Notes: generated by a model from the sequence alone, not told the origin. DNA of 64,000 nt from IMGVR_UViG_3300034104_005687:248001-312000; one strand, 5' to 3'; counted from the first letter of the stretch, positions 21,244 to 46,597 are shown. Numbers and translations: made by a program.

Positions 21244-22203
21244 ATGATCAAGAAATTTCTACTTGCCTTGTTGCTGGTGCCTGCTTTGGCCACTGCTTGG
21301 CAACCCACAAAACCAGTTACTGTGGTATTCCCCAATGGCCCCGGGGCCGGAAACGAAATATCATTTCGTATTGTAGCAGACATTGTGGAACGGAAAACTG
21401 GAGCCAAATTCAATTCTGAATATCGCCCAGGAGCTGACGGCAACATTGCTATCAATCACTTTGTGACAACTCCCCGCGATGGACACACCATTAGTGTGCC
21501 TGCTTGCCAATCAAATTGGGTCACACCTGAAATCTGGTATCCCAACATGATCAAGTACAGCCCAATGGATCTGGAACCCATTGCCAACATTGCTCGCTCA
21601 CCCCTAGCATTTTGGGCACATCCGTCAAGCAAGATCAACACTCCGGAAGAGTTTGTTGCAGCCATTCGTAATAAGCAACGAATGACTGTGGCTATTGGCG
21701 GTGGCGGGCACAAGCTGGCAGTGGAATATCTTGTGGACAAGGTCAGTGTGGCTGGCAGTGATAACTTACAAACTGCTATGTACAAAGGTCCAGCACAGGC
21801 CCTGTTGGATGTCATGGGCGGGCACGTGGAATTTGGCGTAACTCCCGTGGCAGTGGGATATCCTCATGTACAAGCAGGCAAACTCAAGTTCATTGGCATT
21901 GCTGATACACGCCCACTGCCAGGGTTGGAGCACATTCCTTTGATGAGCAAAGCAGCGCCAGGACTCAGCATACACGGCTGTTGGAACATGGTATTGCCAC
22001 CAGGTACACCCCTTGAAATCCAAGCATGGTATCGTGATCAGTTTGTGCCTGCAATTCGCAGTGCAGACGCTGCTGTGAAGTTTCGTGAAAACATGATGTA
22101 CATTACGCCAGAAGAACACAGTGCCGCAGGTGTTAGAGTCAGCATGGCACGTTTGCAGCAGACATGGCAACCCATTGCTCGCAGAATTGATCCCAACAAA
22201 TGA
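21244..22203 (+). CDS. Bug/TctC-family periplasmic solute-binding protein (tripartite tricarboxylate transporter receptor)
   Basis: Signal peptide, 'WQPTKPVTVVFPNGPGAG', 'RPGADGNIA', 'PRDGHT', 'YKGPAQALLDVMGGHV', 'GKLKFIG', 'PPGTP'. AAGGAG RBS. Confidence 0.88.
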   Translation: MIKKFLLALLLVPALATAWQPTKPVTVVFPNGPGAGNEISFRIVADIVERKTGAKFNSEYRPGADGNIAINHFVTTPRDGHTISVPACQSNWVTPEIWYPNMIKYSPMDLEPIANIARSPLAFWAHPSSKINTPEEFVAAIRNKQRMTVAIGGGGHKLAVEYLVDKVSVAGSDNLQTAMYKGPAQALLDVMGGHVEFGVTPVAVGYPHVQAGKLKFIGIADTRPLPGLEHIPLMSKAAPGLSIHGCWNMVLPPGTPLEIQAWYRDQFVPAIRSADAAVKFRENMMYITPEEHSAAGVRVSMARLQQTWQPIARRIDPNK

Positions 22204-27297: not shown

Positions 27298-27641
27298 GAT
27301 ACAGAGAAATACTGGAATCTTGTTGGAAGGGCTATCAGCGTGTGCCAGGCACAGCTGAATACTCACCAGGCAGTTGTGAAAAGATCAGTGAAACAGATCT
27401 TGAAGAAGACCTGCGTAAATGGTTCAAACAAAAGTGGGTGAGATTTGGACCTGACGGCAAGATCCGTGGAGACTGTGCTAGAGGTTCAGAAAAGGAAGGC
27501 AAACCCAAGTGTTTGCCACAGGCCAAGGCACATGCCCTGGGCAAGAAGGGTCGTGCGTCAGCAGCGGCTCGCAAACGTCGTCAAGACCCTGACGCCAATC
27601 GCAGAGGAGCGGCCATCAACGTGGCCACAAAGAAAAAATGA
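27294..27641 (+). CDS. Basic hypothetical protein, putative internal head protein
   Basis: 'MRYREILE' leader followed by two Cys-containing modules, the second Lys/Arg-rich. Confidence 0.55.
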   Translation: MRYREILESCWKGYQRVPGTAEYSPGSCEKISETDLEEDLRKWFKQKWVRFGPDGKIRGDCARGSEKEGKPKCLPQAKAHALGKKGRASAAARKRRQDPDANRRGAAINVATKKK

Positions 27642-28648
27642 AAATCAATCAATTTGTAAACGAATCCCACATGACCTGTCCCGAGTGCGGCGGCCCTGCT
27701 TTCAGTGATCTGCTGTTGGCAGAAAAGAAAGACGCTTGCTATCACAAGGTCAAAGCAAGTGCCAAGGTATGGCCGTCAGCGTATGCGTCTGGACGACTGG
27801 TGCAGTGCCGCAAAAAAGGTGCTGCCAACTATGGCAACAAATCTGAAGGTGTGGCCGAAGATGCTGTGGCAGACTTTGTGGCTCGCGGCGGCCAGATACA
27901 AAAAGGAAAACTACACAAACCACGTAAGGGTGAAACTTGGCAAGGATCATCACATATTGGCGCAGCGGGTGGACAAGGTACAAAAGGTACAGTGTCAGGT
28001 CGAGCTGCAAACACCAACCCAAAGGGTGGTAAACCAGTGGTCAGTGCCGAAGGTTACAATCCTGAATACGATGACGAAGCAGGCATGGCTGACAACAATC
28101 TCGAAACGCTAGAACGTGCAGTCAAAGGCATTGATGACCTAATTCAAGCCGGTGACAACTTGCCAGAATGGTGCCAAGAAAAGATTGCTGTGGCAAAAAG
28201 CATGTTGGTAAGTGTATGGGACTACATGTATTCAGAAGAAGCCAGTGACGAAGTAGATCCTGAAGTCGATGAGATGTTTGAAGCCATGGATCAGTTAGCA
28301 GAAGAGCTGGCTGCCAAGCACAAGGTCAATGTAGACACTGTGTGGGAAAGTTTTGAACAGCTGGATGATCGCATTCTGTACGAAACTGCTGCATGGCGAC
28401 GCAAAGAAGGCAAAAGCAAAACAGGCGGACTCAATGCCAAGGGTGTGGCCAGCTATCGTCGTGAGAACCCAGGATCAAAACTGCAAACTGCTGTGACCAC
28501 AAAGCCAAGCAAACTGAAGCCTGGATCAAAGGCTGCCAAACGCAGAAAGAGCTTCTGCGCCAGAATGTCGGGCGTAAAAGGCCCAATGAAAAAGCCCAAC
28601 GGCAAACCAACTCGCAAAGCACTAGCACTGCGCAAGTGGAACTGCTGA
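27638..28648 (+). CDS. Modular basic/acidic hypothetical protein, putative internal head protein
   Basis: 'MKINQFVNE' leader; modules separated by LAE/VAE/SAE/LYE motifs. Confidence 0.55.
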   Translation: MKINQFVNESHMTCPECGGPAFSDLLLAEKKDACYHKVKASAKVWPSAYASGRLVQCRKKGAANYGNKSEGVAEDAVADFVARGGQIQKGKLHKPRKGETWQGSSHIGAAGGQGTKGTVSGRAANTNPKGGKPVVSAEGYNPEYDDEAGMADNNLETLERAVKGIDDLIQAGDNLPEWCQEKIAVAKSMLVSVWDYMYSEEASDEVDPEVDEMFEAMDQLAEELAAKHKVNVDTVWESFEQLDDRILYETAAWRRKEGKSKTGGLNAKGVASYRRENPGSKLQTAVTTKPSKLKPGSKAAKRRKSFCARMSGVKGPMKKPNGKPTRKALALRKWNC

Positions 28649-31980: not shown

Positions 31981-32757
31981 ATGACAGATCACTACGCCAC
32001 ATTGGGTGTTTCCAAAACTGCCACCGCTGACGAGATCAAACGAGCATTTCGCAAGCTGGCCAGTCAGCACCACCCTGACAAAGGTGGCGATACCGCAGCA
32101 TTTCAAAAAATACAGGCTGCATATGACACACTGGGCGACGCAGCCAAACGAGCTGCCTACGACAACCCCCCAGCACAACACAACTTTTCAAACTTTGGCG
32201 GTGCACAGTTCAATGACATATTTGGTCAGATGTTTGGCGGCGGTGGGTTTCCAGGGTTTAATCAAACACGTCGCAATCATGTGCGTGTGACGCTGTGGAT
32301 AACACTGCATGATGTTGCCACCGGAGGTGCCAGAACAGTGAGTCTAGACACAGCACAAGGTGCCAGTGCTGTGGAGATCAACATTCCTGTGGGCATTGAA
32401 GACAACGACAATGTACAGTATGCAGGCATAGGACCTGGTGGCACTGACTTGGTCGTGACCTTCAAGATTCGCCCAGATTCTCAATGGCAGCGTCAGGGTC
32501 AAAATCTCATTCAAGAACAGCGTGTGAATGTGTGGGATTTAATCACTGGCGGGTCTGTTCAAATCACTGACATTTTGAACAACCAATTGCAGATTACCAT
32601 TCCGGTGGGTACACAACCGGGCACTATGTTGCGTGTGCGAGGACGTGGTCTTCCCAACTCGCAAGGGCAAACCGGAGACATGTTTGTGAGAGTACATGCA
32701 GTATTGCCCCCCAAAATTGCTCCAGAAATACTGGAAGCAATCCAAAAGTATCGCTAA
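31981..32757 (+). CDS. dnaJ: DnaJ/CbpA-type co-chaperone (J domain + G/F region + C-terminal domain, no Zn finger)
   Basis: 'DHYATLGV', HPD motif, 'AYDTLGD..KR..YD', C-terminal 'GRGLP...GDMFV'. Confidence 0.9.
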   Translation: MTDHYATLGVSKTATADEIKRAFRKLASQHHPDKGGDTAAFQKIQAAYDTLGDAAKRAAYDNPPAQHNFSNFGGAQFNDIFGQMFGGGGFPGFNQTRRNHVRVTLWITLHDVATGGARTVSLDTAQGASAVEINIPVGIEDNDNVQYAGIGPGGTDLVVTFKIRPDSQWQRQGQNLIQEQRVNVWDLITGGSVQITDILNNQLQITIPVGTQPGTMLRVRGRGLPNSQGQTGDMFVRVHAVLPPKIAPEILEAIQKYR

Positions 32758-32802: not shown

Positions 32803-35073
32803 ATGTCCATGACAAACAACTCCGAAATTGAAAGCATTGTTGAACAAGCCGTTGAAATTGCTCGCGACAAAAAACATGAATTTGTTATCACCGAGCACTT
32901 GCTGTTGGCCATGATACGGTATCAGCCGTTTCGCAAACTACTGGACAAATTTGGCACAGACACTGAGCACATGGAGGTCGAGGTTGACACATATCTTGGT
33001 GGTCTGACCAACATTGTGACTTCAGCAGAAAACATCCAGCCCAGAAAAACACAGGCTCTGGAACGCATTTTCAATCGAGCCAATGTGCAGGCCATGTTTA
33101 CTGGCCGACGCACACTGACCACTGGCGACTTGTATCTCAGCATCATGAGTGAGAGCAACAGTCATGCACATTATTTCTTGCTGAAATACGGTGTGAAGAA
33201 AACAGAATTCATTGACTTCTGGCAGAAAAACTACACTGCTGCCGAAGGCAAACTCAGCAATACACAAGCCACAGAAATCCTGGAAGAGTACTGCATAAAC
33301 CTCAGTGCCAAGGCCAAAGCCAATCAGCTGGAGCCCATGATTGGCAGAAGCAAAGAAGTACAGGAAATGATCACTGTGCTGGCTCGCAAGTTCAAGGCCA
33401 ACGTGCTGATGGTGGGCGATCCTGGTGTGGGCAAGACTGCTATTGTGGAAGGCTTGGCCCAGGAAATTGTGGCTGGTCGAGTGCCTGCGTTTATCAAGGA
33501 TCATGAAGTATGGGGCTTGGAAATTGGTTCACTGTTGGCCGGATCTAAGTATCGCGGTGACTTTGAAGAAAAACTCAAGTCTGTGATTGCTGCACTGGAA
33601 AGCAGAAAGAACTGTATTTTGTTTGTGGACGAAGCACACACCATGAAAGGTGCAGGAGCCAGTTCCAACAGCAGCCTGGACTTTGCCAACATGCTGAAGC
33701 CTGCTATCACCAAAGGCAGCTTGAAAGTGGTGGCTTCAACTACCTGGGAAGAATACTATGAAAGCTTTGAAAAAGACCGTGCTCTTATGCGACGTTTCTA
33801 TCGCTTGTCGATTGATGAACCGGATACTCTCACTACCGAACAAATTCTCATTGGTTTGTCGCCCCGGCTCGAACAGTTTCACAATGTTCTCATTGATACC
33901 GAAGCCATTACGGGCGCAGTGGAGTTGGCCAACCGATACATCCATGATCGCAAAAACCCAGACAAGTCGATTGATCTCATTGATGCAGCATGTGCTCGGG
34001 AACGTGTCAAAGACGCAGGTACAGTTACAATTACAAAATCCATGATTGAACAACAGCTGAGTCGTGTGGCTGGTGTGCCTGTGGACAAACTGCAAAATGA
34101 ACGCAGTGCCAAAATTGTGGAACTGGAAGGCAATATCAAACAACGACTATATGGGCAAAATTCAGCTGTGGACACTGTGTTGGAACGTGTGTACATCAGC
34201 TTTGCCGGCATCGGCAATGAGAGCAAGCCCATGAGCAGTTTCTTGTTCCTGGGACCCACAGGCACAGGCAAAACAGAATTGGCCAAAGCATTGTCCAACA
34301 ATCTAGACATGCACTTGTTGCGATACGACATGAGTGAGTATCAGGAACGTCACTCAGTAAGCAGTTTGATTGGTGCGCCACCAGGATATGTGGGCTTTGA
34401 AGATGGCAACATCGGCGGCGGCAAACTGATCTCAGACATCAGCAAGCATCCGTTCAGCATTATCTTGTTTGACGAGATTGAAAAAGCTCACCCCGATGTC
34501 ACCAATATCTTGTTGCAGATGCTGGACGAAGGACACATCACTGGCAGCAACGGCAAAAAAGTCAGTTGCAAAAACACCATCATCATCATGACATCCAACC
34601 TGGGTGCACGTGACAGTGAAACCAATGCCATTGGCTTTGGTTCACAAGAAAAAACAGGCGAAGACGAACGAGCCATGAAAGAGTTTTTCAAGCCCGAGCT
34701 GCGAAATCGTATTGATGCTGTGTGCAAGTTTGTGAAACTGGACACACTGGCCATCAAGAAGATTGTGGTAAAGTTTGTGGATGAACTCAAAGCCAGCTTG
34801 GCACCCAAGAACATCAGACTGAATCTTAGCGAAGCAGTGATTGATTACTTGGCAGTCAAAGGATACGACAGCAAGATGGGCGCTCGACCATTGAGTCGCA
34901 AAATTGACGAAATCATTCGTGTGCCGTTGAGCAAGAAGATCTTGTTTGAACGTTTGAGCGACTGCACAGTCAACGTGGATATTCAAAACGACACAGCAGT
35001 GTTTGATGTAGAAGTTGCAGTTCAATCAGGAGTAAATCATGACGGTATCATTGTTGTCAACACTGAAAACTGA
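32803..35073 (+). CDS. clpA: ATP-dependent Clp protease ATP-binding subunit ClpA
   Basis: Clp N-domain 'HEFVITEHLLLA', two AAA+ modules (GDPGVGKT; GPTGTGKT), 'GAPPGYVGF', IGF loop; 756 aa with no ClpB M-domain. Confidence 0.92.
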   Translation: MSMTNNSEIESIVEQAVEIARDKKHEFVITEHLLLAMIRYQPFRKLLDKFGTDTEHMEVEVDTYLGGLTNIVTSAENIQPRKTQALERIFNRANVQAMFTGRRTLTTGDLYLSIMSESNSHAHYFLLKYGVKKTEFIDFWQKNYTAAEGKLSNTQATEILEEYCINLSAKAKANQLEPMIGRSKEVQEMITVLARKFKANVLMVGDPGVGKTAIVEGLAQEIVAGRVPAFIKDHEVWGLEIGSLLAGSKYRGDFEEKLKSVIAALESRKNCILFVDEAHTMKGAGASSNSSLDFANMLKPAITKGSLKVVASTTWEEYYESFEKDRALMRRFYRLSIDEPDTLTTEQILIGLSPRLEQFHNVLIDTEAITGAVELANRYIHDRKNPDKSIDLIDAACARERVKDAGTVTITKSMIEQQLSRVAGVPVDKLQNERSAKIVELEGNIKQRLYGQNSAVDTVLERVYISFAGIGNESKPMSSFLFLGPTGTGKTELAKALSNNLDMHLLRYDMSEYQERHSVSSLIGAPPGYVGFEDGNIGGGKLISDISKHPFSIILFDEIEKAHPDVTNILLQMLDEGHITGSNGKKVSCKNTIIIMTSNLGARDSETNAIGFGSQEKTGEDERAMKEFFKPELRNRIDAVCKFVKLDTLAIKKIVVKFVDELKASLAPKNIRLNLSEAVIDYLAVKGYDSKMGARPLSRKIDEIIRVPLSKKILFERLSDCTVNVDIQNDTAVFDVEVAVQSGVNHDGIIVVNTEN

Positions 35074-36692: not shown

Positions 36693-38162
36693 ATGACCAC
36701 AATTGTAATCATGCCTGGCGGCTTTCACCCATTTCATGCAGGACATGCTGCATTGTATCAAAGTGCGCAACAAACTTTTCCCGATGCTGAAGTGTATGTT
36801 GCTGCCACCAACGATACCAGTTCACGACCTTTTCCGTTTGCTGTAAAAGAAAAGCTGGCTCGATTAGCCGGAGTCGATACAGGTCATTTTGTACAAGTCA
36901 AATCACCGTTTAGAGCAGAAGAAATTACCGCCAAGTTTGATCCACAAAAAGATGTGTTGATCTTTGTACGCAGTGAAAAAGACGCAGCACAACCGCCACA
37001 ACCTGGTGGTGTCAAAAAAGACGGGTCGCCTAGCTACTTGCAGCCTTTGTTGGGTGCTCGAAAGCTAGAACCATTTGCAAAACATGCCTACATGGCATAC
37101 TTGCCCACTGTGGAGTTTGGTCCTGGCATGACGTCGGCCACTGAGATTCGTAGTGCATGGCCCCGGCTAAACGAAAAACGCAAAACAGCTCTTGTGATGA
37201 GCCTGTACCCTAAAACGCAAACGAACCCTAAGTTGGCACAAACTGTGGTCAAACTGTTGGACACAGCATTAGGTGTAGTAGATGAGAGTGCGCTGGATAA
37301 CCTTCCACGCCCAAACAAACGTAATCAATTCAAGAGTCTACACAAACAAAGAAAACAACGTGGACTAGACGAGCAAGGTGTGGCGGAAGGCGTTCCTCAA
37401 CCTGGTAAATCATCTGGCAAACCTATATCCTGGATTGATCCTACCAAAGTTGTAACAGAATATCTAACGCTAGATGAGATATTCAAGTCAGTATCAGGCA
37501 TACCATACTATAACAATGTTGTAACAGATAGAGATAATAAAGACTTTACTTGGGGAGTAACTAAAAGAGTAATTCAATATGCAAAAGAATTAGTCATACG
37601 ACCCGATGCCTATAAAAACTGGCCTCCTATAATAGTTTTAGATGGCAAATTACAAGACGGGGCACATCGCATATCCACTATATACTTGATGCAACAAAGA
37701 GTTCAGCCAAATAACCCAATTTGGAAAAACGCTAAACTAAAAGTAGAATTTGGTACATCAGATAATGTAAAGCAAGGTGTGGCGGAAGGCAACGATGATA
37801 TCTGGGGACCGCAAGGAAACTTTGCTGGAGATATCAAAATAGATGTTGGCACAGCAAGCATGAAAAAAATACAAGCTGGTGATACTGTAAAGTATTTTGG
37901 AGAAACAGCACAAGTAATTGAACTAGATCCAGACAAAAACTATGCTCGAATCTCAGCCAATGGCAAGACTCTGAATGTGCGTTTATCTGACTTAAAACAG
38001 TTAGGTCGAGGTGTAGGCGAAAACCAAGGTTGGGCTGCTACCTTTACCAACGAAGACGACTACATAGAAGAAAAGTGGAGCAGCAAGTACAAAAACAGCA
38101 TCAACTGTGCTGCACCACGAGGATTCAGTCAACGTGCTCACTGTGCTGGCCGCAAAAAATAA
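36693..38162 (+). CDS. Modular protein: HxGH nucleotidyltransferase + ParB/Srx-like cassette + SH3-like module + basic Cys tail
   Basis: 'PGGFHPFHAGH' and 'SATEIR'; 'PPIIVLDGKLQDGAHRI' lies between two QGVAEG repeats. Confidence 0.7.
   Translation: MTTIVIMPGGFHPFHAGHAALYQSAQQTFPDAEVYVAATNDTSSRPFPFAVKEKLARLAGVDTGHFVQVKSPFRAEEITAKFDPQKDVLIFVRSEKDAAQPPQPGGVKKDGSPSYLQPLLGARKLEPFAKHAYMAYLPTVEFGPGMTSATEIRSAWPRLNEKRKTALVMSLYPKTQTNPKLAQTVVKLLDTALGVVDESALDNLPRPNKRNQFKSLHKQRKQRGLDEQGVAEGVPQPGKSSGKPISWIDPTKVVTEYLTLDEIFKSVSGIPYYNNVVTDRDNKDFTWGVTKRVIQYAKELVIRPDAYKNWPPIIVLDGKLQDGAHRISTIYLMQQRVQPNNPIWKNAKLKVEFGTSDNVKQGVAEGNDDIWGPQGNFAGDIKIDVGTASMKKIQAGDTVKYFGETAQVIELDPDKNYARISANGKTLNVRLSDLKQLGRGVGENQGWAATFTNEDDYIEEKWSSKYKNSINCAAPRGFSQRAHCAGRKK
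37372..37390 (+). repeat. 19-bp repeat AGCAAGGTGTGGCGGAAGG, copy 1
   Basis: Exact match to the copies at 37771, 45990 and 46344. Confidence 0.95.
37771..37789 (+). repeat. 19-bp repeat AGCAAGGTGTGGCGGAAGG, copy 2
   Basis: 399 bp (133 codons) after copy 1. Confidence 0.95.
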
Positions 38163-38245
38163 TTGATTTTTGTTTCAAAACCACTAGAAAAATTTTGTCA
38201 GGCCGTGTATAATCTGTAAATATTAGCACATTTTACGGAGATACC

Positions 38246-39148
38246 ATGGCAGACATTCAACCCACAACCACCCCACCTAGCAACACTGATCCCGCTCAAG
38301 TACAGATTCAAGTTGATCTAGATTACTTGCGCACTACTCGTGTTCATATCTGCATGCCATGCTACGGCGGCATGATGACTGAACAAACATTCATGAGCTT
38401 TATCAAATGGGGCAATACTTGTCGCCAATTGGGCATTGACTGGACTGTGGAAACCATGACCAATGAAAGCTTAATCAGTCGTGCACGAAACACACTCACA
38501 GCCAAGTTCTTGAACACACCCGAAAGCACTCACTTGATGTTTATCGACGCAGACATTGGCTGGGAACCCTGGCACCTGTTGGTCATGATCAATGCTCGCA
38601 AAGACGTGATCGGCGGCTTGTACCCCATGAAGAGTTTGCCTGTGAAATGGTGCGTCAACGGCATCCCGGGCAAAGAAGAAGGCACACCCGAACAACCACA
38701 CTTGGTAGAAGTCAGCAAAACTGGCACAGGTTTCTTGTTGATCAAGCGCGATGTGTTTGAAAAGCTGAATCAGCACCCTGCTACTCGTCCGTTCAACAAC
38801 GACATTGGCTTGCCCGAAGAACTCAATCCTTACATGAAAACCTACTTTGACACAGCAGTGCGTGAAAATCGTTACTACTCCGAAGACTGGACATTCTGTG
38901 AAAACTGGCGTGATCTAGGCGGGGAAGTGTACGTGGACAAACGTGTGCTGTTGCGTCACGTGGGCACCTATGTGTTTGACGGTCAAACACAAGACAAACT
39001 GTATCAGGACCTTGCTGCTCTGGTCAAAGGTCCCACACATCAGATTCCTAGCCAGTTGCCGCCTGCGGCTACAGAGGCTGCACCTGCTGCAGAGCCTGAA
39101 GTGTTTGCATCTAGCCAAACCCCCGAAACAACTTCTACAGCTCCGTAA
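38246..39148 (+). CDS. GT-A fold (GT2-like) glycosyltransferase
   Basis: 'ESLISRARN', DxD 'FIDADIGW', 'GTGFLLIKRDVF', 'SEDWTFC'. Confidence 0.7.
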   Translation: MADIQPTTTPPSNTDPAQVQIQVDLDYLRTTRVHICMPCYGGMMTEQTFMSFIKWGNTCRQLGIDWTVETMTNESLISRARNTLTAKFLNTPESTHLMFIDADIGWEPWHLLVMINARKDVIGGLYPMKSLPVKWCVNGIPGKEEGTPEQPHLVEVSKTGTGFLLIKRDVFEKLNQHPATRPFNNDIGLPEELNPYMKTYFDTAVRENRYYSEDWTFCENWRDLGGEVYVDKRVLLRHVGTYVFDGQTQDKLYQDLAALVKGPTHQIPSQLPPAATEAAPAAEPEVFASSQTPETTSTAP

Positions 39149-39162
39149 CGGTAAATACACTC

Positions 39163-42100
39163 ATGAACCTCCATGAGTTAGATTCCTACAACCTTGCAGA
39201 TGCAGTAAAATTCCACAATCGCCTTAACCCGCGGTTGTGGGACAAAACTGAACATCTGTTGCCCGAAGTACACAACAAACTGCTGGAAATAGCAGCCGAT
39301 TTTCAAGAATTTTTGGGTGTGCCTGATCTAGACGTAGTGGATGTCACAGTGTCAGGATCCAATGCAGCCTACAGTTATACCCCACACAGTGACATTGACC
39401 TGCATCTTGTGGTGCAAATGCCAGAGCAAAACAGCGAAGTATTTCAAGAACTTTTCAACGCCAAAAAATATCAGTACAACGATGAACACGACATACGCAT
39501 AGGGGGTGCTGATGTTGAACTCTATGTTCAACCTGCGGATCAAAAACATCATAGTCTAGGAATCTACAGTGTCAAAAACAATGACTGGGTCCAGGTACCA
39601 CGCAGACGCAAAATAGAACTAGACGACCAGTGCGTGGCTCATAAAACTGAAGATCTGGCAGCCAGGATTGATCAAGCTGTGGCATCCGGCAGCGAAGAAA
39701 CCATGCAGCGTTTGTGGGACAAAATTAAGACCATGCGTCAGACTGGGCTAGAGCAAGCCGGCGAGTTTGGCTGCGATAACTTGGTATTCAAAATGCTGCG
39801 TCGTTCTGGACACATCGAACGTTTAACGCAAGCCAAGACACAGGCTCATGATCGTGAGCTCAGTCTCACAGAAAAGAAAAAACGCAAGAAGGCCAAAAAG
39901 AAATTTACCTATGGTGCGTTTGGTGGCTGGTTCTATCCAGGCTACAACTTTGGCGCAGGCGAAACCGGTGATGCTGGTGGCGGAGACGGCGGTGGAGAAA
40001 GTGTACGCGAAGTTGATTCAGGCATTGCACAAGGCAGCGCCATTGGTGACGCTGGTGCACAAAGCACATGGGACGGGGTAAGTCCTGACACTGACGAATA
40101 TCTCAGTGAAGAAGCCGAAGCCGAAAGCATTGTGCGTGATTTCATTAGAGACACTGCTCGCCGACTGAACATTCAGAAACTACCGCGTGTGCGACTACAC
40201 AATGATGACAGCTGGAGCGAAAATGCCGGCAGCTTTGGCAGATACGTACCTGAAACACACGAACTACATGTGAACATGGCCGATCGCCACATCATGGACA
40301 TATTGCGTACCACTGCACACGAATTGGCACATTGTAGACAGCACGAACTGTCGCCGTTGCCTGCTGATGCTGGCAACACTGGCAGTCGTTGGGAAAATCA
40401 AGCACATGCCACAGCTGGTGTGATCATGCGTGATTATGCTGATGCACATCCAGAAATGTTTGACAAATCTGCTGTAACTGAAAGCTCAGGTTACATTCCC
40501 ACTGACGCAGAAAAGAACGATCCACGCTTTGTGATGGCCTTGAGTCCAGATGTTCGTCCAGGCGCAACAGGCAAGAATGCCAACAAGATGGCGTTGAGGA
40601 CCAATGCACAAGGTCAGCCACAATTGGCCAAGACCAATGGCCTAGTAGAAAGCCTGCGTCGAGAGTTTGCTCTCCTAGAGGATGAATTTCTAGGCGAAAT
40701 CAAAATGACCAGCAAGAATCTGCGAGCTGAAGCCGCCAAGACTGGTGCTATAGCTGGCATGGAATTTGAAATGATTGTGCCCAACACTGAAGGCAACGAT
40801 GACGGTGACTTGGAACCCGACTATGACGCAGACCAACGCTGCCGTAGCATAGATGATGCTGTGGAGTTTTTCTATGACGGCGACTACAATGGCCGTAGAG
40901 ATGTTGAAAACCTACGTGCAAGAATGAACAACGATTTCCAGGAATGGCGTGATGATAAAATTGGCAATGATTGGGATACGGATGGGGATGATTATGTGCG
41001 TGAGTGGGTTGCCAACAATGTAGACGAATCAGAATGGAACAACAATGAAGATGATCCTGAAGCTTCGCGTGAAGAAAAATTAGACAACTTTGCTGCTAAT
41101 GTTTACAATGATCCCGGCAGTAATTACCATCAACAAGCATTTGATGAGTTCCGAGAAGAAAATCAAGACTCATATGACGAAAGTGACTGGTTAGACGCTG
41201 AAGACCTAGATCGCATGAGCGGTGTTGAAAACGCCTATGATATTTCTTGGCCGCACTGGACCAGCGGTGGCGGCGGTGGCGAAGCCAGTATTGAAGATGT
41301 AGCACAAGAGTTTGAAAATGCCATAGGCCGTGACGTTCGAGCCAGTGGCAGCTATCATTCAGGACGAGTACAAAGACCCAGCCCTACACAACAACACTAT
41401 GTGGTCGAGCCCGATGGCAGTTTGGAGCCGGATGATACCAATGATCAAGGCCTGGAGTTTGTAAGTCCGCCCCTGCCCATTGACGATATACTAAGTGACT
41501 TGAACAAAGTCAAGGCCTGGGCCAAAGAATATGGCTGCTATACCAACGACTCAACAGGCTTGCACATCAACATCTCAGTGCCCAACTACAGCAGAGAAAA
41601 CTTGGACTTTGTAAAGTTAGCATTGTTAATGGGCGACGAGTATATCCTGGACTTGTTTGGTCGTGTTGGCAATACCTACGCTAAGTCAGCCATGAAGCTG
41701 GTCAAGGAAAAAGTACGTGAAAATCCAGATGCAGCAAAACAGTTGCTGGACAAGATGAAGGGTAACTTGGATGCACTTGCTACCAAGGCCATCCACTCAG
41801 GTATTACCAGCAAGTACACCAGCATCAACACCAAGGACGGACACATTGAATTCCGCTCACCTGGTGGTGACTGGCTGGATGACAACTTTGACAAGATTGA
41901 AAACACCCTGTTACGATTCACAGTGGCCATGAGTGCGGCACTGAATCCGGATGCTTATCGTCAAGAGTATCAAAAGAAACTTTACAAATTGTTGACTGCG
42001 GACCAAAAGGATTCAGACACAATCAAGTATTTTGCACAATATGCTGCTGGTGAGCTACCCAAGGCTGCCTTGCGTAGTTTTGTTAAGCAAGCACAACTAG

Positions 42101-43389
42101 AGCGCAAGGTAAAACGCGGCGAAACAATCAATCAAAAAATGTGGTGGAGCGTTACCAATCCCCCGCAAAGTTCTGCCGGTATAGAAGTTGTTGCTACCTC
42201 TAAAGAAGAAGCCATTGCCCAAGCCCTGGGACCAGATGGCTATCCTGGCTGGGCCAACACACGACAATCAGTTGTGGCCAAGCCTTTGCGTCCATTTGAA
42301 GACACCAGTTTGGACAAACCTTTTGTATGGAAAGTTCAAGGCACTGATTCTCCATATCAAAGACAAGGTATAGAAGTTGTTGCTTTTAGTGAGCTCGAAG
42401 CAATGCAAAAAGCCAGACGACGATGGAATTTAAACATAGGTACAACCCCAGAACAAGAATTCTTTAGAACCAACCGTTGGATTGCTACCACTGTTCGTCC
42501 TGCTGAAGAACCTGAACAAGATCAAGACAGTGCAACAACTGGCAACTGGGGAGCTTATGTAACGGTGCTTGATCGGTTTGCAGAATTCAACGACCAAGGT
42601 ACCACCCGTACTAGGAGATTCAGAGACCAGGCAGCAGCTGAGTCCTGGATACAGAATTATAATATAAGGTACCCTAGAAATGATCTTGAATTGACTGCTC
42701 GAGAGCTTGAACCTTCTGAACAAGCGCCGCAGTCTGGCCGTGCTGCCACAAGCCCAACAGGACAGTGGAAAATGGTTGATGGTTTAAATCGTGAAGTATA
42801 TCGTTTCCGTCCTGCAGAGAATACTAGAGCCAAAGCCAATGAGTTAGCCTCACTATGGGCACGGGAAAACAACTTTGATGGCAATTATCAAGTTGAACCT
42901 GCGGAAGATACTGCACAAACAGATACGAACCCACTAACACCAACAGGCTCTGGACCCTGGGAAGTAGCCAGCAGAAGCAACAATCAAGTTTATTACAACC
43001 CACCAAGCAGTAATCCTATTGAAGCAGAGTCACAATCAAGAACGTGGTTAAGACAAAACGATCACAACGAATCAGACTTTGAAGTACGAACTCGAGAAGG
43101 TGTTGGTGGCACAGACACAGCACAAGGTGGTATCATTGATATTGAACCAGATATATCACAATACAATGCACCACAAACACTGACCCGCCCTGGGCAAGAT
43201 CAGCAGGTGTTTACAGGCCAATGGAAAGTAACACTCGATGGCGAAGAGATTCATCGCTTTGGCGGCATTGGTAACAATCAAATGGATGCAAATCGTGTTG
43301 GCCGTGAATGGGCACGTAATCAAATACGTCAAGGATTATTATATCCTGCGGGCGATATCGAAGTCTTTCCAGTAATGGGAAATGCCTAA
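39163..43389 (+). CDS. Polyvalent protein: Pol-beta-type nucleotidyltransferase + HExxH metallopeptidase-like + amidoligase (COOH-NH2 ligase)-like + C-terminal repeats
   Basis: 'GSNAAY....SDIDLH'; 'AHELAH...E..A'; 'GMEFE', 'EPDGSL', 'GLEFVSP', 'TGLHIN', 'KYTSIN', 'IEFR'. Confidence 0.75.
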   Translation: MNLHELDSYNLADAVKFHNRLNPRLWDKTEHLLPEVHNKLLEIAADFQEFLGVPDLDVVDVTVSGSNAAYSYTPHSDIDLHLVVQMPEQNSEVFQELFNAKKYQYNDEHDIRIGGADVELYVQPADQKHHSLGIYSVKNNDWVQVPRRRKIELDDQCVAHKTEDLAARIDQAVASGSEETMQRLWDKIKTMRQTGLEQAGEFGCDNLVFKMLRRSGHIERLTQAKTQAHDRELSLTEKKKRKKAKKKFTYGAFGGWFYPGYNFGAGETGDAGGGDGGGESVREVDSGIAQGSAIGDAGAQSTWDGVSPDTDEYLSEEAEAESIVRDFIRDTARRLNIQKLPRVRLHNDDSWSENAGSFGRYVPETHELHVNMADRHIMDILRTTAHELAHCRQHELSPLPADAGNTGSRWENQAHATAGVIMRDYADAHPEMFDKSAVTESSGYIPTDAEKNDPRFVMALSPDVRPGATGKNANKMALRTNAQGQPQLAKTNGLVESLRREFALLEDEFLGEIKMTSKNLRAEAAKTGAIAGMEFEMIVPNTEGNDDGDLEPDYDADQRCRSIDDAVEFFYDGDYNGRRDVENLRARMNNDFQEWRDDKIGNDWDTDGDDYVREWVANNVDESEWNNNEDDPEASREEKLDNFAANVYNDPGSNYHQQAFDEFREENQDSYDESDWLDAEDLDRMSGVENAYDISWPHWTSGGGGGEASIEDVAQEFENAIGRDVRASGSYHSGRVQRPSPTQQHYVVEPDGSLEPDDTNDQGLEFVSPPLPIDDILSDLNKVKAWAKEYGCYTNDSTGLHINISVPNYSRENLDFVKLALLMGDEYILDLFGRVGNTYAKSAMKLVKEKVRENPDAAKQLLDKMKGNLDALATKAIHSGITSKYTSINTKDGHIEFRSPGGDWLDDNFDKIENTLLRFTVAMSAALNPDAYRQEYQKKLYKLLTADQKDSDTIKYFAQYAAGELPKAALRSFVKQAQLERKVKRGETINQKMWWSVTNPPQSSAGIEVVATSKEEAIAQALGPDGYPGWANTRQSVVAKPLRPFEDTSLDKPFVWKVQGTDSPYQRQGIEVVAFSELEAMQKARRRWNLNIGTTPEQEFFRTNRWIATTVRPAEEPEQDQDSATTGNWGAYVTVLDRFAEFNDQGTTRTRRFRDQAAAESWIQNYNIRYPRNDLELTARELEPSEQAPQSGRAATSPTGQWKMVDGLNREVYRFRPAENTRAKANELASLWARENNFDGNYQVEPAEDTAQTDTNPLTPTGSGPWEVASRSNNQVYYNPPSSNPIEAESQSRTWLRQNDHNESDFEVRTREGVGGTDTAQGGIIDIEPDISQYNAPQTLTRPGQDQQVFTGQWKVTLDGEEIHRFGGIGNNQMDANRVGREWARNQIRQGLLYPAGDIEVFPVMGNA

Positions 43390-43931
43390 TGCGAGCTAAT
43401 GAGTTTGTTGTTGAAGCACACGTTCCACCTATACGTGATCAGATTCGTGCTGACGTGAAAAAGAATGGTCCTGGTGAATATTTTGTGCGTGTAACTGCTG
43501 TAGACCAACTGGGATTTAGTGCCAGGCAAAAGTTTGGTCGATCGCCCGACATGGATGATCCCAACTTTGATGTAGACTACATTGGTGCAGGCCGAGGACG
43601 TCCTGCACTTTGGTTCTACCCAGTTAACGAATATCTCAAAAACAAAGACTTGTACGCAACAGAAAATCCTTATGTTTGGCTAGTTAAACTAAAAGACACA
43701 GCTTGGCTACAACCTGCTCGTCGTGGTGATTCAGGTGTGGCTAATCCGCCGCAGGGTAAACAACGTGTGGGTATTATGCGTATGAGTAATCCTCCGGCTG
43801 CTATATTCTTCCAGCCAGGATTTGATGTTGTAGGACGTTACTATGACTATGCAGGACAACACAAGCGTCACGGCGAAGTCAAGGGTCGTCCTGATCCTAG
43901 CTGGTTTGATCGTGTTAGAGGTCAATCATGA
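43389..43931 (+). CDS. Hypothetical protein with MRAxEF leader (putative internal head protein)
   Basis: Starts MRANEFVVE. Confidence 0.65.
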   Translation: MRANEFVVEAHVPPIRDQIRADVKKNGPGEYFVRVTAVDQLGFSARQKFGRSPDMDDPNFDVDYIGAGRGRPALWFYPVNEYLKNKDLYATENPYVWLVKLKDTAWLQPARRGDSGVANPPQGKQRVGIMRMSNPPAAIFFQPGFDVVGRYYDYAGQHKRHGEVKGRPDPSWFDRVRGQS

Positions 43932-44410
43932 GAGCACAAGAGTTTGTAGGCGAAAAAGTTTCTCCAGAAACTGCACAAGACGGTTTTCTTGATCAGCAGC
44001 TGGTCAACAACGGAGAATGGACAATCAAAGCCACGGGCGATACACGACGCTATGGTGACACAGTTGCCAATGTGTTGCATGTAAAGGTGTTTGATACCAA
44101 CACCAATGAAGAACTGGCCTGGGTCGATTTTCTTGTAAAAACTCGTAGAGAAGATGGAGAGCGATACATGGAGTCAGCATACACTTATGTAAATCCTCGA
44201 TACCGCGGCAAGGGACTGGCCAAGTTAATGTATCAGTATGCCAATAGCTTGGGCAACGACATTCAACCAAGTCAAATGCAAACTGACATGGGCAAAGGTA
44301 TGTGGAAAGGACTCAACAAGGCTGTGAAACAACCTCCTTTGCTGCCTACTGTGTCTGTGCCCGAGAAACCGCCCAGTGTGTGGCAGCGTTTGCGAAAGGC
44401 CGTGGTATGA
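43928..44410 (+). CDS. GNAT-family acetyltransferase with MRAxEF leader
   Basis: Acetyl-CoA motif A 'YVNPRYRGKGLAKLMY' and 'QTDMGKGMW'; starts MRAQEFVGE. Confidence 0.8.
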   Translation: MRAQEFVGEKVSPETAQDGFLDQQLVNNGEWTIKATGDTRRYGDTVANVLHVKVFDTNTNEELAWVDFLVKTRREDGERYMESAYTYVNPRYRGKGLAKLMYQYANSLGNDIQPSQMQTDMGKGMWKGLNKAVKQPPLLPTVSVPEKPPSVWQRLRKAVV

Positions 44411-44955
44411 GAGCAAATGAATTTACACAACCACGGGCTGCTGGCTGTATAATAGTAGCTGAGGACACAGGTCGTTGGTGTTTACAGCAACGCAGTGACA
44501 CAGTGAGTGATCCTGGCCTGTGGTCAACCTGGGGTGGCGGCTGTGAACTAGGAGAAACACTGGAACAATGTGTGCGTAGAGAGCTGGCAGAAGAAGGTGG
44601 ATATGTAGGCCCACTCCAGTTGGAACCACTCAGCAGCAACAGTCAGTATGCCACCTTTATTGGTCGTGTGCCACATGAATTTGAACCCAAAATCAATCGT
44701 GAATCAAAAGACTGGTGCTGGTGTGAGTCAGATCAACTGCCTGAACCCATGCATCCAGGACTTGCACAAGCGTTGAGTGAAAACTTTGCTGACGGCAAAG
44801 TAAAAGGAAAAAGCAGACCTGGGCGTGTAAAACGTGCAGGTGCCAGCTGCAATGGAAGTGTAACAGATCTAAGAGCAAGAGCCAAACGTGCATCAGGAGA
44901 AAGAGCCCGTATGTACCACTGGTGTGCCAACATGAAATCAGGACGTAAAAAATAA
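44407..44955 (+). CDS. Nudix hydrolase with MRAxEF leader and a basic C-terminal module
   Basis: Nudix box 'GGCELGETLEQCVRRELAEEGG'; ATG 44407 is coupled to the previous stop. Confidence 0.85.
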   Translation: MRANEFTQPRAAGCIIVAEDTGRWCLQQRSDTVSDPGLWSTWGGGCELGETLEQCVRRELAEEGGYVGPLQLEPLSSNSQYATFIGRVPHEFEPKINRESKDWCWCESDQLPEPMHPGLAQALSENFADGKVKGKSRPGRVKRAGASCNGSVTDLRARAKRASGERARMYHWCANMKSGRKK

Positions 44956-44999
44956 GAGGCGGTCTCCTGTAACTTAAACTTATTTCAAAAACAAACAGC

Positions 45000-45445
45000 A
45001 CAAGGTTGGCGGGCCGAATATAATACCGCTGGTGAATCCGCTCTGATGTGTGGCGGTAGCCAATTCTGTCCGCTGTTAACAGGCTTCTGTTCTCTACCCC
45101 TGTGCCGCAGGGATGCCCAGAGAAAACGTCTGCCCTGTGGCAGTAGCGTTAGAACAGTCGTACGGGTTGAGCGTAGCGCAAGCTAGCTTATTGTCAGATA
45201 CTGTCATAGATCCAATTGACACCGAGGGATCTTTAAAAGTCGTAGCAGGTAGGGTAAGGTACAGAGCCCAGAACAGTAGACAACACAAATACCTGCTGTC
45301 ATAAGTGTGGCTGAGCAACTCAGCGAATGTCTTGGCGCCCTGTTTCAGGGTGTCGTATGGCGTCACAATCTAGCGAAATATCTCTTGTGTATTTGTATAA
45401 ACAAAGCGAGCTGACAAGCGAAGCTTAGGATTGCGTAGCAATCCG
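45000..45445 (+). ncRNA. Unidentified, highly structured non-coding element (candidate large ncRNA and/or ssDNA structure)
   Basis: Core of the longest gap in the window (44956-45466), with at least nine readable stems, some with G-U pairs and GCAA loops. Confidence 0.6.
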
Positions 45446-45466
45446 ATCAGACTAAATACAAATACT

Positions 45467-46597
45467 ATGCTATTCAACGAACTCTTTAACTCTAGCCCTG
45501 AACCCCTTGCTGAGGGTGTATTGGATAACCCTGGGCAAGAACACAGCCCGGTTGCGTCTGCTATTATTCGTCGTATCTTGCTACAGCGTACAGACTTATT
45601 GAGCAAGTACGGTCCTGAGCGAGTGGGTGCAGCAGTTGACGATGTTGCTGACTTTGTGGGTGACACGGACGAAATTGGCAGTAGCGATGTATCCGGTTGG
45701 GTTCGCCAAGTTGAACAGATGTTGGGCAACATGACAGAAGCTGGATACAAGCGTGATGCGTATCAAAGAGATTACGACAATAGTGTTGCAGGCATGAGCA
45801 AACGTGACTCTTACGCCTACAGTCAAGACGGTGGTGGCAACGATGAACGCCACGATCTAGATCCCACTGAGTGGTACATTGTCAAAGATGGCAAAATGTT
45901 CAAAGCAACTGTGTATCCTACCCAAGTACAGTCAGCAATGTCACAGGGCTTTAGTCCCAGCAGAGAAGAAGCCAAAGCCAGAGCTGACCAGCAAGGTGTG
46001 GCGGAAGGCTCAGATTTTTTTGCAGGTAGCAAATTTGCCGACGAAGATGGCAATACATTTAGTGTAGAAAAAATAATAGCCTTTGCCAAAAAAAATCCAA
46101 AATATTTTCATAAAGATTTTCCATTATCAAAAATAAAACATGATCTTTCATGGTGGCAAGGAAATAAAGAAAGAATGATGAATGCTGATACAAGTTTTCC
46201 ACTGTTAGTAATTCAAAATGATGATGGACATCTTGGTGTTGCTGATGGGCTTAATCGCATGAAAAAAGCAGTTGATGTTGAGAAGAAAACAACTATTGAT
46301 GTTTATCTAGTTCCAAAAAAAGATATTATGAAGTTCTCTGAAAAGCAAGGTGTGGCGGAAGGTGATATCGGTCAGTTAGAAAAAGATATTGCTGCTGCAC
46401 CAGTTGAGCCTATTGCCAACATGGAAGGCTCCAACGAAAAGATTGGCAATATGGATGCTGATGCGTTTGATTCTGCCATGGCACGCCTTAAAAAGCTAGC
46501 AGGTGCAGGGCCAATGAAAACTGTGTGGGATCCTACCAAACGTGTTTACCGCAACATGCCCACAGCAGTTCAACCTCCTCAACAGCCCAAAAAATGA
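45467..46597 (+). CDS. Modular putative internal head protein with a ParB-like cassette
   Basis: CTAAATA upstream; 'MLFNELF...LAE'; 'FPLLVIQNDDGHLGVADGLNRMKKA' lies between two QGVAEG repeats. Confidence 0.65.
   Translation: MLFNELFNSSPEPLAEGVLDNPGQEHSPVASAIIRRILLQRTDLLSKYGPERVGAAVDDVADFVGDTDEIGSSDVSGWVRQVEQMLGNMTEAGYKRDAYQRDYDNSVAGMSKRDSYAYSQDGGGNDERHDLDPTEWYIVKDGKMFKATVYPTQVQSAMSQGFSPSREEAKARADQQGVAEGSDFFAGSKFADEDGNTFSVEKIIAFAKKNPKYFHKDFPLSKIKHDLSWWQGNKERMMNADTSFPLLVIQNDDGHLGVADGLNRMKKAVDVEKKTTIDVYLVPKKDIMKFSEKQGVAEGDIGQLEKDIAAAPVEPIANMEGSNEKIGNMDADAFDSAMARLKKLAGAGPMKTVWDPTKRVYRNMPTAVQPPQQPKK
45990..46008 (+). repeat. 19-bp repeat AGCAAGGTGTGGCGGAAGG, copy 3
   Basis: Exact match. Confidence 0.95.
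46344..46362 (+). repeat. 19-bp repeat AGCAAGGTGTGGCGGAAGG, copy 4
   Basis: 354 bp (118 codons) after copy 3. Confidence 0.95.

Follow-up and report, generated by a model that had tools for sequence, protein, structure and literature searches.

In T-even phages, tail-fibre adhesins undergo recombinational shuffling at short conserved motifs (the gp37 His boxes and gp38 glycine-rich motifs) that separate variable segments, with genetic exchanges occurring within or near the motifs to give in-frame chimeras (PMC3157838, citing Tetart et al. 1996, 1998). T4 also encodes the prohead protease gp21, which cuts after L/I-X-E and removes the 10-residue capsid targeting sequences of a diverse, fast-evolving set of internal proteins, each of which is a single gene with its own leader (PMC9026906), while giant-phage proteases cut after A/S-X-E (PMC5694885). 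Polyvalent proteins of phages and conjugative elements are long polypeptides of two to 15 disparate domains, with an embedded processing peptidase, typically a zincin-like MPTase hub, that are delivered into the host with the DNA and predicted to be processed into units acting early in the host (Iyer et al. 2017, PMC5512222). In bacterial polymorphic toxins, a short conserved motif (CdiA VENN, Rhs PxxxxDPxGL), also conserved in the DNA, marks the single border per protein at which variable C-terminal domains are replaced by recombination with other cassettes, which come with immunity genes. Finally, integrons gain and lose whole promoterless genes at a repeated site, leaving one site behind, and need an adjacent IntI tyrosine recombinase with an attI site, and attC sites, which are imperfect inverted repeats that fold as hairpins.

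Here we describe a 19-20 nt sequence, AGCAAGGTGTGGCGGAAGG(C), that acts as a standard in-frame connector between modules in long accessory polyprotein (‘beads-on-a-string’) genes of a clade of uncultured T4-superfamily jumbo phages, and at which modules are exchanged. As in the T-even adhesins, exchange points coincide with short conserved motifs between variable segments, but the adhesin motifs are structural parts of one protein family in fixed order, whereas here a single nucleotide-identical connector joins at least 189 unrelated module families, in many genes and in any order. In comparison with T4 internal proteins, many cargos are chained behind one N-terminus with internal sites. The literature that was searched does not describe such a connector, and the paper on polyvalent proteins does not use the word ‘linker’. 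Our modular ORFs resemble polyvalent proteins in carrying 1-8 connectors, that is 2-9 modules or more, and in overlapping domain types (nucleotidyltransferase, GNAT, ParB-like, NUDIX-type enzymes), but no MPTase was found in the window genes, no peptidase family was found in gene 1, gene 2 or the 1408-aa ORF, nor among 150 module representatives, and most modules are novel. The bacterial setting, single border per protein, immunity genes and lack of multi-module chains of the polymorphic toxins are not seen here. Discrete units are gained and lost at a repeated site as in integrons, although the site is a structureless coding 19-mer inside ORFs.

The window, i.e. the whole stretch of 64,000 nt analysed (IMGVR_UViG_3300034104_005687:248001-312000), contains four exact copies of the 19-mer, where 0.03 matches are expected with up to 3 mismatches allowed and 0 of 100 shuffles reach four. 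All four copies are read xAG CAA GGT GTG GCG GAA GGn, giving [E/K/Q]QGVAEG, and form two direct-repeat pairs spaced by 399 nt (133 codons) and 354 nt (118 codons) in two genes (Table 1). The enclosed segments have GC contents of 0.354 and 0.310 against 0.459 for the window, placing them in the lowest 1% and at the very lowest of same-size windows, respectively. The first-pass annotation of this locus, which reported the four copies, the two low-GC in-frame segments and several degenerate copies, was therefore right in its observation, and its hand counts of GC (12/60, 18/60 and 34/60) are exact. Of the degenerate copies, EGVAED and GVGEN are confirmed, the latter being a real module border by comparison with orthologues, while the copy at about 46423 (NMEGS) is only a generic hydrophobic-x-Glu site whose homologue in L205 reads MDEG at the same border (related IMG/VR loci are denoted by L and a number).

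Table 1. Coordinates of connectors, modules and related features in the window.
Position	Strand	Feature	Supporting observation
36693-38162	+	Gene 1, a 489-aa modular protein: nucleotidyltransferase-like N-domain, 30-aa spacer, connector, cassette 1, connector, SH3-like module, GVGEN linker, basic tail	Translation; Pfam CTP_transf_like E 1.8e-4 on residues 6-92 and MSSS SH3 E 1.6e-3; orthologues range from 183 to 971 aa and vary after the N-domain
36693-37373	+	N-terminal part of gene 1 (227 aa) with the HxGH nucleotidyltransferase-like domain	281 relatives in IMG/VR; homology ends near residue 193-204, where orthologues carry a hydrophobic-x-Glu linker
37372-37390	+	Connector copy 1 (EQGVAEG), between the N-terminal part of gene 1 and cassette 1	Exact 19-mer, in frame
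37392-37772	+	Cassette 1, 127 aa, function unknown	85-98% identical copies in five other polyprotein contexts (L203-L207), 53-56% copies in L091, L095 and L116; no Pfam match
37771-37789	+	Connector copy 2 (KQGVAEG), between cassette 1 and the SH3-like module	Exact 19-mer, in frame
37791-38009	+	SH3-like module of gene 1	Pfam MSSS E 1.6e-3; partial homologues in other contexts
38010-38024	+	Degenerate linker GVGEN before the tail module	232-aa orthologues read N-domain, then VAEN, then QGWAAT; border conserved
38025-38162	+	Basic C-terminal tail module (QGWAAT ... AHCAGRKK)	Shared by many ORFs in related loci and by T4-like cyanophage proteins
45467-46597	+	Gene 2, a 376-aa modular protein: 16-aa leader ending LAE, module a, MTEA linker, module b, connector, cassette 2, connector, 21-aa piece, NMEG linker, module c	Translation; modules a and b occur in the reverse order, separated by other cassettes, in L007; module c follows other modules in L205
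45990-46008	+	Connector copy 3 (QQGVAEG), between module b and cassette 2	Exact 19-mer; upstream 90 nt 87% identical to L007, downstream sequence unrelated
46010-46345	+	Cassette 2, 112 aa, GC3 0.18, member of phrog_17560 (unknown function)	PHROG E 2e-10; homologues as a stand-alone gene with a 14-aa leader ending ISE (L211), as an N-terminal domain (L212) and inside a giant polyprotein with LEEA/LDEA linkers (L210)
46344-46362	+	Connector copy 4 (KQGVAEG), between cassette 2 and the C-terminal part of gene 2	Exact 19-mer, in frame
27845-27862	+	Decayed connector copy (EGVAED) in ORF 27638-28648, whose C-terminus is DUF6321	In frame; 10 nt, AAGGTGTGGC, shared with the canonical motif
43389-43415	+	MRANEFVVE leader at a gene start	Member of a repeat family; related leaders at 43928 (MRAQEFVGE), 44407 and 46594

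Searching IMG/VR, we found the exact 19-mer in at least 120 contigs of related phages (GC 0.30-0.52). Conservation of frame in relatives had been proposed as a test of the first-pass reading, and all 147 exact copies are read as QGVAEG in long ORFs with unrelated flanks, while 391 of 394 near-copies lie in frame. Most loci were chosen for holding an exact copy, which inflates some counts. Internal modules between connectors are 19-332 aa long, and 247 of them fall into 189 clusters, with 144 of 150 representatives giving no Pfam hit.

Comparison of junctions between contigs shows that homology begins and ends inside the motif. We observed 73 junction pairs that are homologous on one side only, against 14 on both, and 194 against 6 after removing duplicates. 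Identity of about 0.8-0.9 runs up to the motif and falls to 0.26, i.e. random, in the first 6 nt beyond it. Variants at the edges of the motif go with the adjacent flank, so crossovers lie in the invariant core. The presence or absence of a repeat-bounded segment leaving a single repeat copy, named in advance as a check on the cassette reading, was found in two empty-site/filled-site pairs, L123 against L141 (1467 nt) and L099 against L025 (501 nt), each of which leaves exactly one copy. Identical junctions also recur in contigs from different metagenomes, for example L018/L032 and L074/L078.

The first-pass annotation proposed that the repeat is at once a recombination site for in-frame domains and a protease site (VAE|G) freeing each domain in the capsid, like an integron working inside a protein, and this interpretation is partly supported. 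What the data demonstrate is that the connector lies in one codon phase within long ORFs between small, mostly unrelated modules, that modules are exchanged, inserted and deleted at it in frame, and that its nucleotides are more uniform than selection on the peptide can explain; the remainder of our model is inference. In this model, the connector is at the protein level one version of a general hydrophobic-x-Glu processing site (V-A-E|G), cut by the clade's T4 gp21-type prohead protease or another Glu-specific protease, which would release each module as a separate small protein, probably after targeting to the prohead by a short N-terminal leader. At the DNA level, the identical patch would act as portable homology for the phage's general recombination machinery, such that any two copies on the same strand recombine into an in-frame fusion. 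We hold this explanation with moderate confidence. Homologous recombination on the patch is the simplest reading, although 19-20 bp is short for efficient homologous recombination, and generic linkers with free codons are shuffled too, so the 19-mer is not required for a junction. Selection for viable domain borders alone would also place breakpoints in linkers.

An alternative possibility is that a dedicated site-specific system recognises the 20-mer and moves units of a module plus one copy in and out of genes, the agent being a recombinase, a homing-type nuclease or a nucleic-acid-guided enzyme encoded elsewhere in the roughly 350-kb genome. The sharply bounded site of about 20 nt, conserved at the nucleotide level, is the size of a recognition or guide target, it is uniform across GC 0.30-0.52, insertions and deletions leave exactly one copy, copies occur only in accessory regions, and plain recombination does not explain why the site stays uniform. 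However, no integrase, recombinase, transposase or nuclease was found among about 40 window ORFs scanned with Pfam and PHROGs, the scan being confined to the 64 kb of the window. Unlike attC, the 20-mer has no self-structure (–0.7 kcal/mol) and its flanks carry no information, no guide was found and no antisense stretch of 10 nt or more exists in the window, and adjacent copies do not share variants beyond chance (2 observed, 2.0 expected), giving no duplication signature. Seg-like endonuclease genes are not enriched, being present in 3 of 120 motif loci against 12 of 79 head-region loci, and about half of the copies carry one or more mismatches. An integron-like enzyme system is therefore unsupported, and, with only 64 kb of the genome examined, we consider a dedicated system of any of these kinds unlikely.

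The uniformity of the motif extends to its codons. In loci not chosen by the motif, 8 of 15 GVAE use GGTGTGGCGGAA, against 0.8% expected per site from codon usage. Whether synonymous sites of the repeat diverge freely had been named as a point against the first-pass reading, and we find that motif third positions diverge 0.12-0.16, against 0.38-0.39 in the homologous flank. Positions –2/–1 are AG, while –3 is free among A, C and G, giving K, Q or E. Junctions with exact motifs do not have younger flanks than those with decayed motifs (0.78 against 0.81-0.82 identity); simple recent spread therefore does not explain the uniformity, and what maintains it is unresolved. One hypothesis is that the nucleotide identity serves translation or the mRNA, for instance as a pause site at each module border, from rare GTG/GCG codons and a weak Shine-Dalgarno-like AAGGTG, that lets each module fold, with shuffling being just selection for viable domain borders. 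In these phages GCG and GTG make up 10% and 26% of their codon families, the motif sits strictly at module borders and only in the sense frame, and generic linkers are breakpoints too. On the other hand, pairing to the anti-SD is –7.2 kcal/mol, a value that 10% of random window 20-mers reach as well, a pause does not need 19 of 19 identical bases nor the conserved AG of the preceding codon, and most borders use free-codon linkers without these codons, making this hypothesis improbable.

Cleavage after V-A-E and delivery through the capsid are plausible, but the support is indirect; in the absence of protein data, cleavage, packaging and injection into the host with the DNA are all inferred. 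Nearly all gene-1 orthologues have [V/L]-x-E after the N-domain, with free codons, and generic linkers at the same borders follow a [V/L/I/M]-x-E pattern, although P3 is Val in the connector whereas the published T4 motif has Leu or Ile. In ten cases a Tat signal starts 2-8 residues after the linker Glu, at ORF positions 156-715, and the stand-alone homologue of cassette 2 has a leader ending I-S-E where the polyprotein has the connector. A gp21-family protease is encoded in the clade: L009, a motif-bearing contig, has a T4 gp21 homologue (37% identity over 161 aa, E 1e-16) next to scaffold-like and gp23-like genes, and contig 3300023174_003901 carries both this protease and a gene-1 orthologue, though the protease was not shown for the window's own genome. 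In related loci, 65 ORFs begin MRAx[E/D]F, most continuing [I/L/V]xE, and 25 of 81 motif ORFs have a leader-like start, against 71 of 988 other open frames; gene 2 has a 16-aa leader ending LAE, gene 1 has no recognisable leader, and whether these proteins carry a short N-terminal targeting propeptide removed by the protease is left undecided. There is no positional link to head genes, as 600 kb of head-gene neighbourhoods of the clade hold no copy. It is also possible that QGVAEG is only a flexible, uncleaved spacer in permanently multidomain proteins, as many multidomain phage proteins are never processed, with DNA identity reflecting frequent recombination or gene conversion alone. We regard this as improbable, since Tat signals deep inside ORFs could not work without a new N-terminus, the same modules occur as stand-alone genes with short leaders ending hydrophobic-x-Glu, and the Glu and hydrophobic P3 are the conserved features of both generic and canonical linkers.

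The two enclosed segments in the window are not demonstrably homologous to each other (BLASTP E 0.62, hhalign probability 0.8%). A DGAHR motif in cassette 1 hints at a ParB/Srx-like fold, but neither cassette nor its homologues gave a Pfam ParB hit (the best is ParBc_2, E 0.14, for a distant relative), PDB profile searches found nothing and the AF2 model of cassette 1 has a pLDDT of 44, such that only a DG[A/L][H/N]R motif resembles the family. AT-richness, which the first-pass annotation had associated with the enclosed segments, is not a general property of enclosed modules, as the mean GC difference is 0 over 247 modules. Rather, it marks these two cassettes as recent imports from lower-GC relatives, with cassette 1 keeping a GC content of 0.35-0.36 in backgrounds of 0.39-0.48 and the composition of cassette 2 matching low-GC relatives.

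The repeat described in the first-pass annotation is present as stated, and our searches extend it greatly. The 19-mer AGCAAGGTGTGGCGGAAGG occurs exactly four times in the window, always on the same strand, and with up to three mismatches allowed nothing else matches, while shuffled sequence gives 0.03 matches. Each copy is read as xAG-CAA-GGT-GTG-GCG-GAA-GGn, that is [E/K/Q]-Q-G-V-A-E-G, and the copies lie in two genes, in pairs spaced 399 and 354 nt apart, both whole numbers of codons. The three GC counts made by hand in the annotation are exact. The two enclosed segments have GC contents of 0.354 and 0.310 against 0.459 for the window, which places them in the lowest 1% and at the very lowest of same-size windows, respectively. 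Of the three degenerate copies that had been proposed, those at 27845 and 38010 are real, whereas the one near 46423 is only a generic site. Coordinates of these and other features are collected in the table below.

Coordinates of the connector copies, their host genes and neighboring features. Positions are those of the window except in the last two lines, which refer to the related loci L009 and L204.
Feature	Position	Strand	Description
Connector copy	37372	+	exact 19-mer, in gene 1
Connector copy	37771	+	exact 19-mer, in gene 1
Connector copy	45990	+	exact 19-mer, in gene 2
Connector copy	46344	+	exact 19-mer, in gene 2
Gene 1	36693-38162		ORF, 489 aa
Gene 2	45467-46597		ORF, 376 aa
Decayed copy	27845		EGVAED
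Decayed copy	38010		GVGEN
Generic site	near 46423		
MRA[N/Q/S]EF leaders	43389, 43928, 44407, 46594; also 27294, 27638		gene starts
Basic C-terminal tail	38025-38162		..KYKxSINCxxPxGFSQxAHCAGRKK
Related tail	44407-44955 (C-terminus)		..HWCANMKSGRKK, on the NUDIX protein
J-domain protein and ClpB/ClpA-like double AAA+ ATPase	31981-32757 and 32803-35073		ATPase: Pfam AAA_2 E 6e-56
1408-aa ORF	39163-43389		amidoligase domain (Pfam E 1.3e-8); N-terminal phrog_36119 region
Exact 18-nt repeat	42178 and 42367		in the 1408-aa ORF, 189 nt apart
TctC/Bug-family periplasmic solute receptor gene	21244-22203		Pfam E 1e-21
Seg-like GIY-YIG endonuclease gene	L009 3241-3987		also in L033
Copies flanking cassette 1	L204 2482 and 2881		shared variant CAAAGT, QSVAEG

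The window encodes a family-B DNA polymerase whose best cultured relatives, at 42-50% identity, are jumbo myoviruses of the T4 superfamily, namely Sinorhizobium phage Phosso, Agrobacterium phage Atu_ph07 and Escherichia phage 121Q. It also encodes a clamp-loader-like ATPase, a ClpB-like ATPase and a tail-fibre-like protein. The TctC/Bug-family receptor gene, found here in a phage, is a possible hint of a Burkholderiales-type host. Loci from an IMG/VR contig of 349 kb are 100% identical at the protein level to gene 1 and both cassettes of the window. No DNA-level relative exists among 50,697 deposited phage genomes, with no blastn hits in INPHARED, and by tblastn only the N-domain of gene 1 and the 30-aa tail find distant matches.

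The motif is a property of a whole clade. An exact search of IMG/VR found the 19-mer in at least 120 contigs, in which all 147 occurrences are read as QGVAEG within long open frames and the sequences on both sides are unrelated from one copy to the next. A repeat occurring out of frame had been named beforehand as grounds for rejecting the cassette reading; in about 1.09 Mb of these loci we counted 394 sites within three mismatches of the 17-nt core, of which 391 are in frame in ORFs of at least 80 codons. The information profile is a sharply bounded block, with A and G at positions -2/-1, the 17-nt core, C or T after it, and nothing in the flanks. A bacterial origin was rejected, as 596 Gb of bacterial and archaeal genomes contain only 19 hits, nearly all singletons consistent with chance and mostly in high-GC genomes, with one (L230) that looks like a mis-binned phage contig. 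Within genomes of the clade, 600 kb of head-gene neighborhoods, chosen by the gp21-like protease gene, contain no copy, so that there is no positional link to head genes and the motif is confined to accessory regions.

In these loci, 141 ORFs carry one to eight copies, and the segments between copies are 19-332 aa long, with a median of about 67. The 247 internal segments fall into 189 similarity clusters, and 144 of 150 representatives match no Pfam family; these genes are chains of many small, mostly unknown modules. Gene 1 consists of a nucleotidyltransferase-like N-domain, a spacer, a connector, cassette 1, a second connector, an SH3-like module, the GVGEN linker and a basic tail. Gene 2 consists of a 16-aa leader ending LAE, module a, an MTEA linker, module b, a connector, cassette 2, a second connector, a short piece, an NMEG linker and module c. 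In the related locus L007, modules b and a occur in the opposite order, with two other cassettes between them. The 1408-aa ORF of the window is probably another multi-module protein with generic linkers. Whether the two window cassettes are homologous ParB-like domains was examined and not shown; a structure prediction of cassette 1 from 6 sequences gave a pLDDT of 44, for which reason no fold search was run, and a full-length alignment misaligned its fragments and was not folded.

In order to ask whether modules are exchanged at the motif, we compared every pair of motif sites between loci. In 73 pairs the sequences are at least 70% identical over 90 nt on one side and random on the other, while only 14 are similar on both sides; with duplicates removed and decayed copies included, the counts are 194 and 6. 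On the homologous side identity stays at about 0.8-0.9 up to the motif, whereas in the first six bases beyond it identity is 0.26. Variants at the 5' edge of the motif travel with the upstream flank and those at the 3' edge with the downstream flank, and the switch therefore lies inside the invariant core. The first-pass annotation had proposed, as its decisive test, a search for orthologues in which a repeat-bounded segment is precisely present or absent with one copy left behind, and two such cases were found. Locus L123 has one copy where its relative L141 has two copies 1467 nt apart, these being orthologues of gene 1 of the window, and locus L099 has one copy where L025 has two copies 501 nt apart; in both cases the flanks match up to and from the motif. 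Cassette 1 of the window also occurs at 85-98% amino-acid identity in five other polyprotein contexts. Chance and assembly artefacts were rejected as explanations, given the expectation of 0.03 matches in the window and the in-frame position of almost all near-copies, and chimeras are unlikely because identical junctions recur in contigs from different metagenomes and because the homologous flanks are about 20% diverged rather than identical.

The nucleotides, and not only the peptide, are held constant. In 63 loci chosen by homology to the gene 1 N-domain rather than by the motif, 8 of 15 GVAE peptides use GGT-GTG-GCG-GAA, where codon usage predicts 0.8% for any one site, and the rest differ by one or two synonymous changes. 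Loci with the exact 19-mer range from GC 0.30 to 0.52. The codon before the core is nearly always NAG, with N free among A, C and G, such that the residue varies between Lys, Gln and Glu while the two bases are kept. Freely diverging synonymous sites in the repeat, in orthologues that always carry the same insert, had also been named in advance as evidence against the reading; with sites ascertained by peptide only, the free third positions of the motif differ in 12-16% of junction pairs, compared with 38-39% for third positions in the homologous flank. Third positions are still about 2.5 times more variable than first and second positions inside the motif, so the peptide is under selection as well. 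About half of all copies carry at least one mismatch, and exact copies do not have younger flanks than decayed ones. The constraint is real but soft, and we found no explanation for what maintains it. Shine-Dalgarno-like pausing was considered as well and was unremarkable.

Taken together, the interpretation offered in the first-pass annotation is supported in part. In-frame shuffling of cassettes is supported by the sequence comparisons themselves; the reading of VAE|G as a protease site and of the products as delivered through the capsid is inferred, and is plausible with several independent indirect supports; the integron-like enzyme is unsupported but not excluded.

With respect to cleavage, aligning 61 distinct orthologues of gene 1 shows a short linker of the form [V/L]-x-E-x immediately after the conserved N-domain in almost all of them (e.g. 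VAEN, LAEG, LNEF, LDED and VDEN), after which different modules follow. These generic linkers use free codons, while the QGVAEG type keeps its DNA. Hydrophobic-x-Glu is thus the general rule at module borders, and the 19-mer is a special version of it that is conserved at the DNA level. Ten twin-arginine signal peptides start 2-8 residues after the linker Glu, at positions 156-715 of their ORFs; as such signals work at an N-terminus, a new end must be created there. Canonical examples (..[S/D/T]RRGFL[K/R/G]G followed by an Ala/Gly-rich stretch) are embedded deep in polyproteins directly after linkers in loci L037, L068, L088, L101, L103, L127, L141, L160 and L182, implying that some released modules are exported to the periplasm. 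The stand-alone homologue of cassette 2, in locus L211, has a 14-residue leader ending I-S-E where the polyprotein has the connector.

Leaders at gene starts point in the same direction. In the clade, 65 ORFs begin MRAx[E/D]F and most continue [I/L/V]-x-E, and consecutive genes of the window start with MRA[N/Q/S]EF, often continuing [V/I]-x-E, with the start often overlapping the previous stop as ...AAAAAATGA; it is possible that this leader is a capsid-targeting-type propeptide. T4 gp21 has been stated to cut after Glu in L/I-X-E and to remove the 10-residue capsid targeting sequences of internal proteins (PMC9026906), and giant-phage proteases cut after A/S-X-E (PMC5694885). A gp21 homologue is found on the motif-bearing contig L009 (37% identity, E 1e-16), followed by scaffold-like and gp23-like genes. 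None of these observations is evidence at the protein level. Close relatives of this gp21 homologue lie on jumbo contigs, one of which also carries a gene 1 orthologue. The J-domain protein and the ClpB/ClpA-like ATPase lie just upstream of the polyprotein gene block, and a phage chaperone pair next to chained cargo genes may be relevant to unfolding or refolding.

A dedicated recombinase is not supported by our searches. The approximately 40 window ORFs scanned contain no integrase, transposase or nuclease family, the site has no hairpin, and no guide-like antisense copy exists in the window. Adjacent copies do not share variants more than expected by chance, so that a signature of target-site duplication or local gene conversion is absent, although in locus L204 both copies flanking cassette 1 carry the same rare variant, a single case that is unexplained. 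Seg-like endonuclease genes are not enriched near the motif overall. In L009 and L033 such a gene lies between the major capsid gene and a motif-bearing ORF, but the close relative L234 lacks everything after the capsid gene, and this looks like a separate mobile insertion, as with segD after gene 23 in T4. T4-type phages recombine intensely, and exchange at short conserved motifs is documented for their adhesins (PMC3157838); general homologous recombination on the 19-20-nt patch is therefore the simplest mechanism. In this view, because every copy has the same codon phase, any exchange between two copies on one strand is in frame. Generic linkers are breakpoints too, so selection for viable borders contributes, and only 64 kb of a roughly 350-kb genome was examined. 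An unlikely but not excluded alternative is that the 20-mer is the recognition or guide target of a dedicated, still unseen enzyme of these jumbo phages, which copies or moves in-frame protein modules between genes and between co-infecting genomes. This would be a natural standardised-part system for building proteins, in which the connector doubles as the protease site that later separates the parts.

Processed phage polyproteins and motif-mediated shuffling are each known, and exon-shuffling-like evolution of proteins is well known in eukaryotes, whereas in phages module exchange is usually seen between whole genes or within one protein family. What has not been described, in the literature we could search, is their combination in one frame-fixed, nucleotide-identical connector shared by at least 189 unrelated small modules across hundreds of giant-phage contigs, with breakpoints mapped to within a few bases. 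Full-text searches for QGVAEG, for GVAEG together with phage, for the DNA string and for jumbo-phage polyprotein linkers returned nothing relevant, and the paper defining polyvalent proteins does not mention linkers. Such a connector would explain how these phages assemble and re-assort a large arsenal of small accessory proteins. It also gives a simple sequence handle, as searching for the 19-mer finds the arsenal and delimits hundreds of unknown domains, and it makes testable whether giant phages load chained cargo into capsids and cut it apart, and how short a homology patch can drive in-frame exchange. Finally, it offers a natural design rule for linking and releasing protein parts.

The AT-richness of the two window cassettes is not general, as enclosed modules show a mean GC difference of 0.00 over 247 modules. 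Cassette 1 keeps GC 0.35-0.36 and GC3 0.25 in three phage backgrounds of GC 0.39-0.48, at 86-92% nucleotide identity, and cassette 2 (GC3 0.18) resembles its homologues in phages of GC 0.30-0.34; both are best read as recent imports from lower-GC relatives. The basic C-terminal tail, of about 35-45 aa, ends many polyproteins of the clade and also occurs in hypothetical proteins of T4-like cyanophages.
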